A stretch of DNA of 64,000 nt, taken from IMG/VR virus record IMGVR_UViG_3300049215_000771, positions 372,001 to 436,000 of that record; one strand, 5' to 3'. How positions within the stretch are numbered: the first letter of the stretch is position 1; each line of letters starts with the position of its first letter. Positions 17,858-47,609 of this stretch are shown here, one piece after another. Below the pieces are notes generated by a model. It saw only the letters and a list, made by a program, of their open reading frames with translations. It searched no databases and had not been told where the DNA came from. The position numbers and the translations under genes are program-made.

Positions 17858-19219
17858 ATGCCTGAGCAACTGATTCTTCGGCGGCGGTTGGGCAAGAAAA
17901 CTGGCGATGACAAGATCGAGGCGCAGGTTGATTACATCATCCGACGTGGGCTGCATGGCAGCCGAGGCAAGGGATGGGAAGTCAACAAGCGTCGTCACCC
18001 GCCCCGCAAAAACGGCGACTGGTGGGAGTTTCGCTACGACCTGTCGTTTGAAAAAACCGGGGGTCGTGGTCGTGGTACGGACACCGAATACCGGCAGTGG
18101 GAAGACATCAAGGCGATGATTATCCAGCAGGGTGCTGCCGCCAAATTCGGCGACTACCCCTGGGAAATCTTCAAGCCAACCGGAGAAGCCATCGGCACAA
18201 CTGCTGAAAACATTCGGGCGGCTCAACAAGAAGTCCGCACGAACAATGCCCTGGCGAACCTGGGTGGCGCTCCCCAACTGACGGCCCCGCCCCCGCCCGC
18301 TCCCGACAACGCCGTGACGCCCGACGCCAACGCCGAATCCATCGGTGACGTGGTGGGCGAGTTGAACAAGATCGTGACCAGCCTGGGTGGGGTCCGGGAA
18401 GTCCAGACGACCTTCAGCGTGGTCAAATCCTGGTCCGACCTTCAGATTCCCCCTGAACTGCTCGGTCGTGACAGTGACTTCCATCTGTCGCAACACCCGG
18501 CCTGGGCCGAGTTGTACGGCGTCGGGGCACAGATTCGTACTGTGCTTTCCAACATCAAGCGGGCGCACGACACGGATGGTCGCAGCCGCAACCACGGCGT
18601 CCTTTACGGACACGCCGGCTGTGGCAAGACAACCACCTTGCTGGCGCTGGAAGCAATGTTCGGACCTGGCTCCGTCCTTCGCCTGGATGCTACCAGCACC
18701 ACCAGGGCAGGCATCGAGAAGCTGTTCTTCTCCGATCTGCCCGTCATTCCGCCGCTGGTGTTCATGGAAGAAGCTGAGAAGGCAGACCCGGAAGCGTTGA
18801 AGGTTTGGCTGGGTGCCCTCGACGACCGTGGCGAGATTCGGAAGGTCAACTTCCGGGTCAACCAGCTTCGTGAAGTCAAGGTTCTGTTCATCTGCACTGT
18901 CAACAACAAGACGTTGTTCGACAAGATGATGGGTTCCGATGGCAGCGAGGCGGGCGCTCTGTCGAGCCGTTGTGTCAGCCAAATTTACTTCCCCCGGCCC
19001 AGCGACGTGGTTCTCCGTCAGATTCTTCTGAAGGAAGTCCACCGCAACGGCGGCGAGGAAGCCTGGATCAATCCGTGTATTCTCATGGCCCAGGAATTGG
19101 GCGTCACCGACCCTCGCATCGTCCGGTCGTACCTGGCAGGTGGTGAACGGCTGCTGGACGGCAGCTACCAGCGGGACTGGCAGGCCATCGCCGAGGCTGC
19201 CAAGACTTTCAGGAAGTAA
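17858..19219 (+). CDS. AAA+ ATPase with unknown N-terminal domain
   Basis: Walker A GHAGCGKTT, Walker B LVFMEE, ICTVN sensor 1, ALSSRC arginine finger. Confidence 0.88.
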   Translation: MPEQLILRRRLGKKTGDDKIEAQVDYIIRRGLHGSRGKGWEVNKRRHPPRKNGDWWEFRYDLSFEKTGGRGRGTDTEYRQWEDIKAMIIQQGAAAKFGDYPWEIFKPTGEAIGTTAENIRAAQQEVRTNNALANLGGAPQLTAPPPPAPDNAVTPDANAESIGDVVGELNKIVTSLGGVREVQTTFSVVKSWSDLQIPPELLGRDSDFHLSQHPAWAELYGVGAQIRTVLSNIKRAHDTDGRSRNHGVLYGHAGCGKTTTLLALEAMFGPGSVLRLDATSTTRAGIEKLFFSDLPVIPPLVFMEEAEKADPEALKVWLGALDDRGEIRKVNFRVNQLREVKVLFICTVNNKTLFDKMMGSDGSEAGALSSRCVSQIYFPRPSDVVLRQILLKEVHRNGGEEAWINPCILMAQELGVTDPRIVRSYLAGGERLLDGSYQRDWQAIAEAAKTFRK

Positions 19220-28623: not shown

Positions 28624-28850
28624 CAATATCCTCCAGCCACTCTCGACGGCACGGCGAACAACTGATTCGTCTGCTGGGCCGGGACGGGGTAGCCCACGGT
28701 ATCCCTTGGCTTTTTCTTCTTGCATGGGCAGTCGGGCGGCAGTTGAACCTTTCTGTTCAACACTTCGTCATTCTCCAGCCATTGTCTGAAGGTTATCCCC
28801 AGGTCGGGCCGAGAACATCGCCGAATCTCGTTATCAGCCTTTCTTCCCAT
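28623..28850 (-). CDS. small protein with internal CTS-like motif; start uncertain
   Basis: ITFRQWLENDE; stop TGA overlaps the next ATG. Confidence 0.45.
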   Translation of the reverse strand: MGRKADNEIRRCSRPDLGITFRQWLENDEVLNRKVQLPPDCPCKKKKPRDTVGYPVPAQQTNQLFAVPSRVAGGY

Positions 28851-29668
28851 TCTTCCTTCTCCTTAGTGCCACGCTGAAGAATATCTTGTCCGTTCAACTG
28901 GACACCGCCGTTTGGTCCTGGCGGGTTCTGAATACGGGAACGAATCTCACCCAACATAATCCGAGCGAAAGCCAAGGCACCTTCCTGCATGGCTTGCTTC
29001 ACTTCCCTGAAGTTCGCTTTCTTCTGTAGATAGTGGACAACAACTGTATATGTACGGAAAGGAACAGGGTACAACTTCACATGGTTGTAACCACCCAGCC
29101 ATTCCCAACCGCCCTGCTGAGAAGAAATACGCTGGAACATGGCCTCGTATTGCTTGTAGAGTACCCACTCCGACATCTTGCCCCACACAGGTTGCTGTGG
29201 GTTGATACCACCAGCGATGGAGCCATAAGCACCAGCACCCATGTACTCCAGGGGGATAACGCCGCCCAGGTCAGAGGCCGAGAAAGCATAGACCGGCGTG
29301 CTGAGGTAAGAAACCTTGCGGATCAAACCAACATCTGGCGGCATCTCGTAAACGCTTTGGCCGGGGACGGTGTTGAAGGTGTGATACTGAAAGTATTCCA
29401 TCGGGGCGTAATCTTCAAAAATCATCAACGCCTCATCGACGGCCAAATCCAATTGTTGTTCATCAAGTTCCAATTTAATTGATGGCGCACCGAGCATACC
29501 TAGAACATAATGCTTGATCTGCTCACGAACGACCTCCCGTTCCTTCCTGGGACCGAGCAAGCGGACGTAAGTTGGATCGCATGGACCCAATGAGTTACAG
29601 TTGTTGCATTGAGCGTTGGCGTAGTCGGCCTTGGTAGGTCTGGAAACAAACAGCATATTGTGGTTCAT
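28793..29668 (-). CDS. gp13: neck protein, T4 gp13-like
   Basis: IKHYVLGMLGAPSIKLELDEQQL, LGEIRSR, PGPNGGVQLNG; TATATA 5 nt upstream of ATG 29668. Confidence 0.8.
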   Translation of the reverse strand: MNHNMLFVSRPTKADYANAQCNNCNSLGPCDPTYVRLLGPRKEREVVREQIKHYVLGMLGAPSIKLELDEQQLDLAVDEALMIFEDYAPMEYFQYHTFNTVPGQSVYEMPPDVGLIRKVSYLSTPVYAFSASDLGGVIPLEYMGAGAYGSIAGGINPQQPVWGKMSEWVLYKQYEAMFQRISSQQGGWEWLGGYNHVKLYPVPFRTYTVVVHYLQKKANFREVKQAMQEGALAFARIMLGEIRSRIQNPPGPNGGVQLNGQDILQRGTKEKEEWEERLITRFGDVLGPTWG

Positions 29669-29690
29669 GAAGCTATATACCGATACAGAA

Positions 29691-36299: not shown

Positions 36300-37298
36300 A
36301 TGAGCCAGCTTCCACAAGACCCACAGAAAAGTTTGCCTGAATGCCAGATCAAGTCGGAAACTCCGACACCGAATCTGGACCCGGCACCACCATATTGTGG
36401 GCGTGACGAAGACGACCAGGTGAGCAAGCGTGCTATCAACGACGATTTCTCAAACTGGTTGAAGGACGACCTAAATCAGAAACAAGGCTACGGAGCCAAG
36501 GTTGACTGCGACCCGATGATGACGGGTCACATCCGAAATGATCCCAACAAGCCGAACAAGAACACTCTCTACCGTTATTCCAAGGCATTGAGAGGAACTG
36601 ATGAAGCTATCTTGGATATGTTCGGTGACATTGAAGTAATTGACGAGGATGGCAAGGCACATCCAGTCCCAATCATTTGGGGCAGTCAAGAGAAGGCAGT
36701 CGCCGCCATTATGTTTGATAACGTCAGGAAGGACGAGTCGCTGGTGGTTGATCGGATTAGGCTGCCGATGTTGGCAGTTTCTTCCACGGATTTTTCCTAC
36801 GACATGAATCGTTACACCTACCACCAGGCGTTGGACTTCATGCGATACCTTCGTCCCGACAGAAAGCCGGGCATGACGTTGAATGAAGGAGGGCTGGAAA
36901 GAAGCACAATTTTCGGGAAAACACGGGGTATTCCGGTGAACGTCACCTACACGTTGATAGCGTGGACGATGTACATCGAAGACATGAACCAAATCCTCGA
37001 ACAAATTCTTCTAAAATTCAGCCCCATTGCATACATACGAGTAAGAGGCGTATCCTGGGAAGTCGTCGCCAAGTTAGACAGCATCGCTAATAACTTGGAT
37101 ACGGAACCGGGAGATCAGGCGATCAGGGTGATTAAATTTCAGTTCAACATAACGGCTGAAACATACATCCCACAGCCAATTGCAAGAAGGAAGGCCATCC
37201 TCAAAACGAAAGTTGAACTTGTGGATGGCATGACCGAGGACGAAATCACGCAGGTAATGGCCAGACTGGAAGAAGCTGTTAAGGAGCTAGAATGCTAG
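36300..37298 (+). CDS. gp15: tail terminator/sheath stabilizer, T4 gp15-like
   Basis: VPIIWGSQEK, RLPMLAV, IPVNVTYTL, DMNQILEQIL. Confidence 0.85.
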   Translation: MSQLPQDPQKSLPECQIKSETPTPNLDPAPPYCGRDEDDQVSKRAINDDFSNWLKDDLNQKQGYGAKVDCDPMMTGHIRNDPNKPNKNTLYRYSKALRGTDEAILDMFGDIEVIDEDGKAHPVPIIWGSQEKAVAAIMFDNVRKDESLVVDRIRLPMLAVSSTDFSYDMNRYTYHQALDFMRYLRPDRKPGMTLNEGGLERSTIFGKTRGIPVNVTYTLIAWTMYIEDMNQILEQILLKFSPIAYIRVRGVSWEVVAKLDSIANNLDTEPGDQAIRVIKFQFNITAETYIPQPIARRKAILKTKVELVDGMTEDEITQVMARLEEAVKELEC

Positions 37299-43119: not shown

Positions 43120-44020
43120 ATCCATTCTCCCGCTCAACACTGAAATCTACGTCGGAGACATAGGCTCGGACGACGGTAGCTTGTACATTGCCAAGCGCTA
43201 CGGAGCCAAGATAAAACGATATTACCTTACCGACGACTACAGCGAGATTCGCAACACCATGATCGCCGACACGGAAGAAGATTGGATATTATTCATCGAA
43301 CCGTGGGAAGCTATCATGAAAGGGCAAGGTAACATCGCTAATGTCATCAAAAACAAGCCAGCAGCCTACCGCTTCAGCGTCATTCAGGGCGACATCATCA
43401 CCAAGGAAGTCCGCCTGTGGCACAAAGACCTTGGGCTGAAATTCATCAACCCTGTGTACGAAACAATCATCGAAGATCGAGCCAAAGATTTGCCCGTGTA
43501 TGTCCACTCGGCGGGCGGGCACAAAGACCACAAAGAACTGGTGGCCCGCTGGAAACAAAAAAAACCCCTGGCGACGGAACCAATCTACTACGAAGCCTGC
43601 ACTTTACTGATCGAGAAGAAGTGGGACTCCTTCTTGAACGTGGCCGATCACTACATTTTCACGGAGAAGAAACCGAAGATGGCCTTGACCATGATCCGCT
43701 ACTACTGTGCGATGGTCAATTGCTACGTCAAGAAAAACTACCAGAAGGCTTTGGAATACCTACTTCCAAGCATCGCCGAGAAGCCAACAATGGCCGAGTT
43801 TTGGTGCTTGTTGGGGGACGTGTTTTACGCCACGAAACAATATGAGAAGGCGACGGTTTTCTACGAGAATGCGGCGATTCTTGGCAGTCGTCGCCTGAAA
43901 AATGATGATTGGCCGTTCGAGATCACCAAGTACAAAGAGTACCCGGCCAAGATGATGGAAGCGTGCGCCCAGGTCATCGGAGCGTCTAGGCTTTATGCAG
44001 GGCCACGGACAACTCTTTGA
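43058..44020 (+). CDS. GT2-like glycosyltransferase with TPR-like C-terminus
   Basis: VGDIGSDDGS, DYSEIRN, WILFIEPWE, VRLW, PVYETI; helical C-terminus. Confidence 0.8.
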   Translation: MKLATHLILRNNKHTLERAVESILPLNTEIYVGDIGSDDGSLYIAKRYGAKIKRYYLTDDYSEIRNTMIADTEEDWILFIEPWEAIMKGQGNIANVIKNKPAAYRFSVIQGDIITKEVRLWHKDLGLKFINPVYETIIEDRAKDLPVYVHSAGGHKDHKELVARWKQKKPLATEPIYYEACTLLIEKKWDSFLNVADHYIFTEKKPKMALTMIRYYCAMVNCYVKKNYQKALEYLLPSIAEKPTMAEFWCLLGDVFYATKQYEKATVFYENAAILGSRRLKNDDWPFEITKYKEYPAKMMEACAQVIGASRLYAGPRTTL

Positions 44021-44426
44021 TCTTCTGCTTCATGCCTTCTTGTATAATGCTCAGTTTCTTCGTCTCAATTGCCATCCGGTCTTCCATCACTTTGAGTGCG
44101 GTAACGTCGGTCAAAGAGCCTTCGATATAGCCTTCTTCTGGATACACCTTGCCAGTGACGGAAACCCAAATATGTTTGCCGTTCCCCAGGACGAGTTCGA
44201 CGTGGTAATCGTTGATCTCGCCATTCGCCGTCAACTCATCAAGGATGTGCTTGCGGTCGCCGTTGACATAGAGATGGATTGAGTTATCTTGCAATAGTGT
44301 GTCTACAGAGTCATGCCCTAGCAGTTTGGCACAAGCCAAATTCGCCATGAGGAATTGTCCGCCGTCAATTGATGTTCGCCAGAAGGCAATGGGCGAGTTC
44401 TCGTAGAACGATTTGTATTCATTCAT
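43986..44426 (-). CDS. stand-alone PAS-domain protein
   Basis: YKSFYENSPIAF, ANLACAKLLG, NGKHIWVSV, EGSLTDVT. Confidence 0.85.
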   Translation of the reverse strand: MNEYKSFYENSPIAFWRTSIDGGQFLMANLACAKLLGHDSVDTLLQDNSIHLYVNGDRKHILDELTANGEINDYHVELVLGNGKHIWVSVTGKVYPEEGYIEGSLTDVTALKVMEDRMAIETKKLSIIQEGMKQKIKELSVALHKA

Positions 44427-44451
44427 AATATACCCTGGAGTATATAGCCAC

Positions 44452-44829
44452 TCAATAAATCAAATCCAACTCATTTACGATGACCGTAACCTGGTCCTCG
44501 TAACGAGCTACAGCAATTTGTTTCCTTCCTGGGCCGAGCCGGCGCAGCTTCTCCTCCAACTCATCCTTGGAGCAGTTGATGACGGAGAAATTGTTCTTCG
44601 CCAGGTTGGAGATTTCTTCTTCGACGTTGAGCAATTCACGGCCCGGATAGTAAGCCATCAACTGATCTTTGGCTTCACGGAGGATGCGCCTGTAGATCGG
44701 CAGATTGCAGGCGCATCCTGGGTTGTGCAGAAATTTTTGAACGTCGTCTTTGAATTCTTGTGGCAGGCTATCACGGAAACGAGAGTCCCGTAGAGCTTGC
44801 TTCACTTCCATCAGGCTGATTTGTTTCAT
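44452..44829 (-). CDS. hypothetical protein
   Basis: NPGCACN motif; coupled in minus-strand operon. Confidence 0.7.
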   Translation of the reverse strand: MKQISLMEVKQALRDSRFRDSLPQEFKDDVQKFLHNPGCACNLPIYRRILREAKDQLMAYYPGRELLNVEEEISNLAKNNFSVINCSKDELEEKLRRLGPGRKQIAVARYEDQVTVIVNELDLIY

Positions 44830-45115
44830 ATTCTGTCTTCTGAATCTGACGGGCCATAATGACTCGACCACACTTTGGACACCGAAACTTCTTTCTTTGA
44901 AGACTCGGTTTTGGAACAAACAACTTACTTGTTTCAACAGCAGGTTGGTGCATCCCTCCAGGCTGACGTTCTTTCTTAGCCATTGGGTCTAATTGAGGGA
45001 CGCCTCCTGGGACTGGAGATTGCTTGATCTCGTATAAATCCTGGCAGTCTGATCCATCGCTGATTCGCTTGTACCCACAATAATCACAGTACAATTGGTA
45101 ACACTTGACGCTCAC
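44771..45115 (-). CDS. Zn-ribbon protein
   Basis: CDYC...CPKC. Confidence 0.7.
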   Translation of the reverse strand: MSVKCYQLYCDYCGYKRISDGSDCQDLYEIKQSPVPGGVPQLDPMAKKERQPGGMHQPAVETSKLFVPKPSLQRKKFRCPKCGRVIMARQIQKTEYETNQPDGSEASSTGLSFP

Positions 45116-45447
45116 TTACCCTCCTGCTTTTGCTCCTGCTCATCCAGCGCTACCATTGTTTGTGACTCGTAGTAATTCAACAGCACTGCCGCCATGTTTG
45201 CCAGAAATCCGCCCGCAAACCCACAAGCAACAATCTTGAAGGGGTTGTAGCTGATCCAGATCAAACCCATCAGGAAGCCGACCCAGGTGCCGCAACAAAG
45301 ATAGCAATCGACAAGACCGCCCAGCTTCGTCCCGTCAAATTTCTTTTTCCACCACTCCCTGAATCCGGCGAGTATAGACCCATCAATGATAATGTGAGTC
45401 ATGCCGATGGTGCAAAGGGCGAACAACAATACCAGTCCAAAGTCCAT
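45112..45447 (-). CDS. membrane protein, DUF1360-like
   Basis: TM segments; LVDCYLCCGTWVG. Confidence 0.75.
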   Translation of the reverse strand: MDFGLVLLFALCTIGMTHIIIDGSILAGFREWWKKKFDGTKLGGLVDCYLCCGTWVGFLMGLIWISYNPFKIVACGFAGGFLANMAAVLLNYYESQTMVALDEQEQKQEGK

Positions 45448-45456
45448 AGCGACTCC

Positions 45457-45816
45457 TTAGTTGAAAGGAATGTATTCCACTCTAGTCCTACCACCACGGA
45501 CGGGGATGAAGAATACTTCTTGATCTTTCTTTATTCTACACAGCCCATCCCTGTCGTTTAGCTGTTGCTTCATTCTTTCAACAAACGCTTCTGCCTTGAA
45601 AGGGGGAAGTTGTCCTACGTCGATGTAGAAAACAAGACAACCACGAACGTAGTCGTTCAGTTTTTCTTTTTTTCCGCTGTCCCATTCAGCATCTTGACCA
45701 TTGCCAGGCTCGGCTTGTTCGTGTTGTTGATACATAGTCCATTCACCTTGCTTGCCCCACACGGCATCAGGACTCCACGATTCCATCTTCTTCTCGTCCA
45801 TTGGCTCTCCTTTCAT
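45457..45816 (-). CDS. small protein resembling a T4 gp20 portal sub-domain
   Basis: VFYIDVGQLPPFKAEAFV and FFIPVRGG. Confidence 0.7.
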   Translation of the reverse strand: MKGEPMDEKKMESWSPDAVWGKQGEWTMYQQHEQAEPGNGQDAEWDSGKKEKLNDYVRGCLVFYIDVGQLPPFKAEAFVERMKQQLNDRDGLCRIKKDQEVFFIPVRGGRTRVEYIPFN

Positions 45817-45819
45817 GAG

Positions 45820-46182
45820 TTATCGCCAGTACGTTATGTATGCTTTGTCTGCGTCACGATGAACGCAAAAATCCTGGAAGCCGACAAACTTGCACAAATC
45901 AGTTTCGATAAGGTCCAAACCACCTTCATGGTGCTGCACAAGCCGTCCGTCGATTTTGTCGATAAGAATTGTTGTACCGACGTACTCTTCTAGCCTACGG
46001 ACGTGTTCTATTTTCAAGGAGTTGAGGAATTCAATAATGGTCCTCTTGCCAAGGGTTTGTAGCCCTGGCACTCTTTTGCTGAGACTCCACTGATCGAACA
46101 AGTGTCGGAATTCCGGGAGCAGTGATTGCAGATTTTTGTCGAAGAAAATAACCTCCTCGACATTTTGCAGATTTAGTTCCAT
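45820..46182 (-). CDS. hypothetical protein
   Basis: 120-aa ORF heading the minus-strand operon. Confidence 0.7.
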   Translation of the reverse strand: MELNLQNVEEVIFFDKNLQSLLPEFRHLFDQWSLSKRVPGLQTLGKRTIIEFLNSLKIEHVRRLEEYVGTTILIDKIDGRLVQHHEGGLDLIETDLCKFVGFQDFCVHRDADKAYITYWR

Positions 46183-46233
46183 GACACTATTTTAGCCTAC
46201 TCTACATTAGAGAGTAGAACCAAGGAGATAATT

Positions 46234-47415
46234 ATGGCTGATGAAACTTTCCGCCCACGACGCCCAATGGGTCAAGCCACCCCGAAGCCGGGTGACGAAG
46301 ACCAGGTTGAAGGTCAGGGACCGGGAGTGGCAGCTTTCGCCAAGATCGACGCAATGCGTCAGGCTGCCGCACAAGATGAAAGAGAAGAAAGAGAAGAAGG
46401 ACAGCCTGAGCGTGAACGTCAGGTAAGCCCGGCTGAATTGCCTTTCAAAGTTGAAGGCAAAGTGCCGCAGGGTTTCTTGGACGCCATGAAGTCTGGCGGT
46501 CGTAGTGTGCCTGGTGCTGAACCAAAACGTGGTTTTGGTCAGATGGGCCAGGGGCAGCAAGGCAAGAAGCCGGCCAAGAAGAAAGACCAGCAAAGCGCCA
46601 TCCTGTCCGCAAGCAGTGGACAGTTGAAGGAATTGCTTGAGGGCTTGAAGGGTTCGACCACTTTGTATGAAGAAATCGAACTTCCTTCCAAGGGTCGTTT
46701 CTACGATGGCACTAACGGGCCGACCAACGGCGTCGTTGCGATTCGTCCAATGACGGGTGAGGAAGAACAAATCTTGGCAACCCCAAGGTTCGTCCGTAAA
46801 GGCCAGGCCATCAACATGATCTTCTCCAAGTGCATGAAAGATGACCTTCGCCCGGAAAACCTGTTGACAGTTGACCGCACTTACCTGTTGATTTACCTCC
46901 GTGGTATTTCCTACAGCCCACAGTACGATGTTGAAGTCAAGTGCCCGGAATGCGAGAAGAAGTTCGCCACGACCATTGACTTGAACACCTTGTACGTCGA
47001 ACCGTGTCCTGAAGATTTCGGGCCGGACCTGACCGACGTGCTGCCTACTTCAAAATACAAGTTCACCTATCGCCTCTCGACAGGTAAAGATGAGCAGGAA
47101 ATCCAGGACTACCGTGATCGTCGTATCAAGCACTTCGGCGATGCCGCCGCTGACGATACCCTGACGCACCGCACGGCACAGTTGCTTGTTGACATTGAGG
47201 GATTGACCGACAAGCGTGAACTTCAGATGCTCATCAAAAGCCTGCCAATCAACGACGTGGCTTACATTCGTAACTGCGTGAATGAACCGCCGTTCGGCGT
47301 GGATACCGACGTGGAGATTATTTGTCCTTCTTGCTTGCATGAGTTCCAGGTGGACCTGCCATTGGAGGCCAATTTTTTCTTCCCTCGGAAGAAGAAGGAG
47401 AGCAGGCAAGCCTAA
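46234..47415 (+). CDS. baseplate hub assembly / tail chaperone, T4 gp26-like
   Basis: IELPSKGRFY, RPMTGEEEQIL, DRTYLL..LR.ISY, CPEC, CPSC, NFFFP. Confidence 0.85.
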   Translation: MADETFRPRRPMGQATPKPGDEDQVEGQGPGVAAFAKIDAMRQAAAQDEREEREEGQPERERQVSPAELPFKVEGKVPQGFLDAMKSGGRSVPGAEPKRGFGQMGQGQQGKKPAKKKDQQSAILSASSGQLKELLEGLKGSTTLYEEIELPSKGRFYDGTNGPTNGVVAIRPMTGEEEQILATPRFVRKGQAINMIFSKCMKDDLRPENLLTVDRTYLLIYLRGISYSPQYDVEVKCPECEKKFATTIDLNTLYVEPCPEDFGPDLTDVLPTSKYKFTYRLSTGKDEQEIQDYRDRRIKHFGDAAADDTLTHRTAQLLVDIEGLTDKRELQMLIKSLPINDVAYIRNCVNEPPFGVDTDVEIICPSCLHEFQVDLPLEANFFFPRKKKESRQA

Positions 47416-47417
47416 CG

Positions 47418-47609
47418 ATGTGGAAGCAGCTTGCAGAAGAAATCTTCTTCTTCCAGTATCACATGCACTTGCCTATGGCTGCGTCGATGACACTTCCGAT
47501 CAACCTGAGAAAATGGATGATCGAACGCTACATCGAGCAGAAAGAAAAAGAACACGAGGCTATGGAGGCCCAGCGTCGGAAAGCAAGTGCCGGCGTCAAG
47601 AAGCGTTGA
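47418..47609 (+). CDS. gp51-like small tail/baseplate chaperone, probably also made as a -1 frameshift fusion
   Basis: EEIFFFQYH..MTLPINLRKWMIER; in the -1 frame of the upstream slippery site. Confidence 0.75.
   Translation: MWKQLAEEIFFFQYHMHLPMAASMTLPINLRKWMIERYIEQKEKEHEAMEAQRRKASAGVKKR

Follow-up and report, generated by a model that had tools for sequence, protein, structure and literature searches.

Does a 119-residue open reading frame of a huge moss-associated phage that bears motifs of a T4-type portal encode a genuine free-standing copy of part of the portal, and if so, what might such a protein do? The frame lies in a 64,000-nt stretch (here the window, positions 372001-436000) of a 532,729-bp IMG/VR virus record (G000:C1), and had been proposed in a first-pass annotation to encode a free clip-domain mimic that may regulate packaging, block a competitor's terminase or decoy portal-sensing defences such as Avs. 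The observation itself is confirmed, as the frame exists at 45457-45816 on the minus strand and contains both of the portal-like motifs on which the annotation rested, whereas its interpretation is only partly supported, in that the homology to the clip is borne out but none of the three proposed functions was shown. The features to which we refer below are, in window coordinates:

45457-45801 (minus): most likely coding sequence of the mini-protein, 114 aa from Met6, stop codon included; the 119-aa frame runs on to 45816.
45807-45812 (minus): Shine-Dalgarno-like AAGGAG serving the Met6 start.
45460-45645 (minus): portal-clip-like domain, residues 58-119 in 119-aa numbering; predicted strand, tip turn, helix, short helix, two strands.
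45589-45615 (minus): clip tip GQLPPFKAE, residues 68-76, equal to T4 gp20 G290-A298.
45718-45765 (minus): gp13-like motif in the N-terminal tail, residues 18-33 (AVWGKQGEWTMYQQHE).
45820-46182 (minus): upstream gene, 120 aa, with no function assigned; its stop lies 3 nt before the first ATG of the 119-aa frame and 18 nt before the Met6 start.
45112-45447 (minus): downstream gene for a 111-aa hydrophobic, probably membrane protein, 9 nt after the stop of the mini-protein.
28793-29668 (minus): gp13-like neck adaptor gene, 291 aa (PF26809), the source of the tail motif.
29144-29188 (minus): the VWGKMSEWVLYKQYE segment inside the gp13-like gene.

The likely start is Met6 (ATG at 45801-45799) rather than the first codon of the frame, as AAGGAG lies 5 nt upstream of this ATG, the identical database protein P0002 (114 aa) begins there, and homologues begin at the same point with MDEK, MEEK or MDKK. 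Pfam Portal_T4 (PF07230) matches residues 62-89 only (E 1.6e-4), covering positions 208-235 of the 433-position model at 21.0 bits, below the cut-off of 22.9, and phrog_213 'portal protein' matches the same stretch at E 7.5e-5. The protein is thus not itself a portal, and with 114-119 residues it has no wing, stem or crown domain and cannot form the portal channel as a full portal does. The true portal of this phage is a separate 855-aa gene (P0019) about 85 kb away at G000:C1:330903-333470 (L001:406-2973), and BLASTP aligns residues 62-117 of the mini-protein with portal residues 515-585 at 41% identity (E 9e-13), with a deletion of about 15 residues. This is far beyond chance, as a profile of the small homologues hits only this gene and the portal in the 533-kb genome. 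The portal appears to carry an intein-like insert of about 230 residues (roughly 104-334, starting with Cys and ending in HN followed by Cys) ahead of the region that aligns with T4 gp20 (portal 366-730), as well as a long Pro/Gly/Gln-rich acidic C-terminal tail.

A three-way alignment places residues 58-119 on T4 gp20 284-351, inside the clip domain (279-358), which is described as three strands and helix alpha6, projects from the capsid and serves as the site of attachment for the terminase gp17 and later the neck (PMC4493910; PDB 3JA7). The mini-protein therefore begins about where the clip begins and stops just short of its end. Residues 68-76 hold the equivalents of T4 N291, M292, R295 and K296, residues implicated in gp17 and gp13 contacts (PMC4493910, PMC12929587), and R107 equals T4 R339. 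At the two clip motifs T4 itself reads VWYVDTGNMPARKA and EDYWLQRR, whereas the portal of this phage reads VFYVDVGQLPPFKAEAF and EDYWLPIRP, such that the motifs given in the first-pass annotation are those of other T4-type portals. An AF2 model computed with 15 homologues gives a confident core (pLDDT about 86-95 for residues 56-119) with strand 59-66, helices 72-86 and 88-95, and strands 99-106 and 112-117, an element order matching that of the clip, whereas residues 1-50 are disordered. Foldseek against predicted viral structures (BFVD) ranks T4-type portals first (E 1.7e-4, probability 1.0, 72-81 aligned columns). Foldseek and a wide VIA-align search against solved structures gave only weak thioredoxin-like or mitoribosomal matches and no portal (best Z 4.1), and the ESM Atlas gave no usable hit by features, so that structural support is real but rests on predicted models only.

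To establish whether the frame is a gene or a remnant, we examined its relatives. Seventeen proteins match at E<=0.01 (close homologues at 46-79% identity), of which fifteen are small (86-171 aa) and two are fragments of true portals. An exhaustive profile search finds 396 clusters at E<=1e-3 and 162 at E<=1e-10, with true portals hit at about 1e-13; of the best 150 only 11 are true portals or pieces of them, and the rest are 63-324 aa with a median of 126. The small proteins share a shorter helix-to-strand loop (median 28 residues against 44 in portals), which argues for a single origin. The mini-protein carries all the features of this family, namely a core of about 60 residues with a G-x-(L/M)-P-P-x-K-A-E tip, P-x-R, T, and a loop of about 25-32 residues. 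Between two orthologues whose synonymous sites are not saturated, dN/dS is 0.11 overall, 0.12 in the tail and 0.07 in the clip; evidence of a pseudogene fragment had been named beforehand as grounds for rejecting the observation, and this condition fails. A search of viral loci with the family alignment returned mostly true portals, and tblastn of the clip core and of the relative P0011 against cultured phages found only an uncultured 595-kb phage (LR756511) and the true portal of Caulobacter phage Cr30, such that no cultured phage in that collection carries a detectable mini-protein.

The gene sits in a cluster whose neighbours recur in three related contigs (L003, L005 and L012). The 120-aa gene stands upstream of the mini-protein in L005 and L012, and as an 83-aa call in L003; some of its 17 homologues lie on contigs equal in length (1250, 12370, 93486 and 29096 nt) to those of mini-protein homologues, its dN/dS is 0.08, and its AF2 model (pLDDT 77.6) has no informative fold match. 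The downstream 111-aa protein has weak DUF1360 and phrog_781 matches, is syntenic in L005 and L012, and has a dN/dS of 0.10. Further downstream lie a Cys-rich (CxxC) protein and a gene whose counterparts in L005 and L012 carry PAS domains. The cluster diverges from a gp26-like baseplate hub gene, with tail sheath and a late sigma factor nearby, and the 51-bp gap between them (46183-46233) holds a perfect 7-bp inverted repeat (CTACTCT...AGAGTAG) and the only TAAAATAG of the genome. No T4-type TATAAATA is present in the window. A candidate phage promoter element, GTATATAG, occurs 25 times in the genome (25 of 27 TATATAG sites are preceded by G), with window sites at 29673(-), 33702(-), 37439(+), 42019(-), 57246(+), 14382(-) and 44441(+), and lies upstream of the gp13-like, tail-sheath and late-sigma genes but not of this operon. 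The stretch 43900-47500 is held at 100% of sampled words by moss metagenome runs, and moss and plant metatranscriptome contigs match parts of it exactly (43951-44121, 44991-45150, 45842-46027, 46371-46573 and 46759-47073), covering the upstream 120-aa gene, the downstream genes and gp26 but not the mini-protein itself; although DNA carry-over cannot be excluded, this suggests that the phage may be active in moss-associated communities.

The N-terminal tail, which is disordered, acidic and tryptophan-rich, revealed a second parent that the first-pass annotation had not seen. The gp13-like neck adaptor of the window (phrog_211, E 3e-18; weak match to T4 gp13 chains; 100% identical to the 291-aa P0163) contains VWGKMSEWVLYKQYE, and the tail of the mini-protein has VWGKQGEWTMYQQHE, with 9 of 15 residues identical (E 6e-5; shared pattern VWGKxxEWxxYKQ). 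Orthologue tails match gp13 over 33-37 residues at E 3e-6 to 1e-5, and an HMM built from the tails of other orthologues finds in the whole genome only the mini-protein (1e-10) and gp13 (1.3e-5), with the next ORF at 0.26. In 24 gp13 homologues that are 59-88% identical to this one, the W, G, W, K, Y and E of the segment are invariant. The protein is nevertheless not a gp13, as it has no helix bundle, adaptor loop or C-terminal arm and gives no Pfam or PHROG hit to gp13. The gp13-like adaptors of this clade carry an N-terminal CxxC...LGPTDP motif, and the mini-protein orthologues P0004, P0005, P0009 and P0010 begin with a similar CGNCGWDGVTPL, which hints that their tails descend from a longer gp13-clip fusion. 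A weak alignment places the tail segment near T4 gp13 165-190, at the end of domain II, the 'swing' domain, although that this segment faces the clip is not established by it. In the T4 virion domain II swings up and packs against clip helix 295-309 and hairpin 311-325, and the gp13 C-terminal arm inserts between adjacent clip helices with salt bridges to R295, K296 and R339 (PMC12929587, PMC12929629). The mini-protein thus joins pieces from the two sides of a known interface.

The family displays several architectures: 12 members carry the gp13 motif plus a clip, about 16 of 146 carry helix-bundle segments of gp13 before or after the clip, 5-6 carry the C-terminal crown helix of the portal, 14 begin with a Tat-like signal peptide, 10 carry a CxCxYC motif, and some carry two clips in tandem. 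Across 146 members the best-kept residues are G68, R107, P105, V67, A75, L/M70, P72, T111 and K/R74 (G68 99%, L/M70 99%, P72 89%, K/R74 87%, A75 91%, R107 96%), which include the equivalents of T4 M292, K296 and R339, residues that genetics and structures tie to terminase and gp13 contact. In T4, M292, R295 and K296 are needed for packaging, and a 24-residue laboratory peptide covering gp20 288-311, the same tip and helix kept by the mini-protein, binds gp17 and inhibits packaging in vitro (cited in PMC4493910), showing that an isolated clip piece can compete for terminase.

The reading we favour, tentatively, is that of a soluble, cytoplasmic mimic of the portal docking surface, acting as a monomeric competitor or cap for the portal-neck junction. 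In this view its clip would bind the ligands of the clip (the gp13 C-terminal arm, possibly TerL), and its tail may occupy the gp13-binding face of a clip, either its own or that of the portal, which would keep neck and motor components from docking at the wrong time or place. The new evidence points at least as much to gp13 as to terminase. The analysis establishes homology to both parents, a confident predicted fold for the core, purifying selection, a large family, and fusions of the clip to gp13 parts in relatives, whereas all binding (including any to terminase or to a host sensor), the direction of the effect (chaperone or inhibitor) and its timing are inferred. A co-fold of the mini-protein with the gp13-like protein, each with its own alignment, scored 0.00 against a mark of 0.32 and counts neither for nor against binding. 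The gp13 arm in T4 needs two adjacent clip helices, which a monomer lacks, and the mini-protein lacks most of the 311-325 hairpin that domain II touches, its helix-to-strand loop being about 28 residues against 44 in portals. The tip matches the phage's own portal almost exactly, so any competitor would also act on the phage itself, and the relatives with Tat-like signal peptides or the interior crown helix are not explained by a cytoplasmic docking mimic. The kind of role proposed resembles that of host Hfq on the T4 gp13/gp14 neck, a small non-virion protein that transiently occupies a connector surface and prevents wrong docking, although Hfq is unrelated in sequence or fold and its role is shown by structures and genetics (PMC12929587).

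The main rival is an immune decoy or antagonist, plausible but in our view doubtful, that would present the portal clip and a gp13 segment to Avs4/Avs11/Avs12-type STAND NTPases sensing the portal or its adaptor, binding them without triggering them or titrating them before the late proteins appear. Portal, portal adaptor, capsid protein and terminase are reported triggers of Avs families (bioRxiv 10.64898/2026.01.04.697583). In a search for paralogues, four small ORFs of the genome were found to match different parts of the capsid-protein profile, and in all at least 14 further mini-proteins end in a shared tag, a basic run followed by [YW]R[SN]ID[DE]PW, with codons that differ between copies. 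Five of these ORFs (81-133 aa; G000:C1:58150-58437, 351357-351617, 453411-453812, 517817-518062 and 518216-518509; loci L094-L097) each carry a different piece of the phage's own major capsid protein (43-88% identical to MCP residues 55-102, 218-310, 316-368, 400-448 and 436-463) followed by a basic run plus YRSIDDPW. The same tag ends a fragment of the prohead maturation protease (phrog_207; true gene at 337220-337906) and two partial SSB-like proteins (phrog_1192), at 238157-238627 (-), 18099-18464 and 36315-36992, and six more small ORFs without a match (loci L187-L195 together). Tagged capsid-protein pieces also occur in other IMG/VR contigs (L180, L183, L184 and L186), and these fragment proteins are conserved in related contigs. 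A regular-expression scan of the mini-protein and all fetched relatives finds no such tag, and the mini-protein belongs to a much wider family.

In two other viral contigs that hold mini-clip genes (L016:2144-3917 and L014:2816-3718), a shortened Gp23-like capsid-protein paralogue (321 or 301 aa) lies directly upstream of the mini-clip gene together with, in L016, a 272-aa TerL ATPase-domain-only protein that begins with the same Tat-like MNRR...GLG peptide seen on 14 mini-clip relatives; a replication module (kinase, SSB) follows. P0011 also lies among replication genes. Against a decoy, no defence-related domain or known anti-defence family matched, a fragment that binds a sensor could just as well activate it, Avs sensors are described as wrapping whole folds over extended interfaces, and in this phage the gene sits among tail, baseplate and late-sigma genes rather than in an obvious early region. 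A broader reading, which is not excluded but which we regard as doubtful, is that this lineage makes a whole repertoire of mini-proteins from pieces of its own most conserved proteins, with the portal clip plus gp13 motif here and tagged pieces of capsid protein, prohead protease and SSB elsewhere in the genome. Related lineages have a TerL ATPase-only protein and clip-gp13 fusions behind a shared Tat-like peptide. If these form one system, it would be a class of self-derived molecular mimics that we did not find described, either a decoy battery against host receptors that sense core phage proteins or a set of interface caps that govern assembly.

An assembly factor or structural part is less likely. 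Such a protein would cap the exposed strand edge of unassembled portal (or gp13) subunits like a chaperone, or co-assemble as an extra ring or plug at the portal vertex. The crown helix and the ring-forming gp13 helix bundle found in relatives are oligomerization elements, tandem clips occur, the region also holds sheath, late-sigma and baseplate-hub genes, and T4 neck assembly uses an accessory factor, Hfq, to prevent mis-assembly. However, the protein is far less widespread and less conserved than the portal or gp13 (17 close homologues, against 539 gp13 homologues of which the best 120 are at least 62% identical), as is typical of an accessory gene, and in other phages it sits among replication or accessory genes. 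More unlikely still is a weapon against co-infecting relatives, a dominant-negative subunit or terminase trap that poisons a competitor's packaging or head-tail joining. The inhibitory T4 clip peptide is in line with this idea. Satellites such as SaPIs and PICIs use structural mimics (Ppi, CpmB, Ccm) to interfere with helper packaging. Yet the tip is nearly identical to that of the phage's own portal and its motif is shared across the whole clade, such that no self/non-self discrimination is visible. A non-functional leftover of a partial portal duplication, suggested by the short length and the sub-threshold Pfam match, is contradicted by the low dN/dS while synonymous sites are near saturation, the intact frame with its Shine-Dalgarno sequence, the loop deletion shared by 396 related clusters and the confident core fold.

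Literature searches found no paper on free clip-domain proteins, no Pfam family other than the portal model matches, and a few members hit unnamed PHROGs (phrog_12349 and phrog_23805). The protein is a portal-domain paralogue with a new, mosaic architecture, in a family of hundreds of clusters in environmental T4-like and huge phages. The portal clip is the hub where DNA packaging hands over to head-tail joining, and is also a target of bacterial immune receptors. A natural, conserved, free-standing copy of that surface, fused to a piece of its neck partner, would be a ready-made probe of how that hand-over is controlled, or of how phages blunt portal sensing, and its appearance alongside other self-derived fragment proteins in the same genome suggests a general strategy rather than a one-off.
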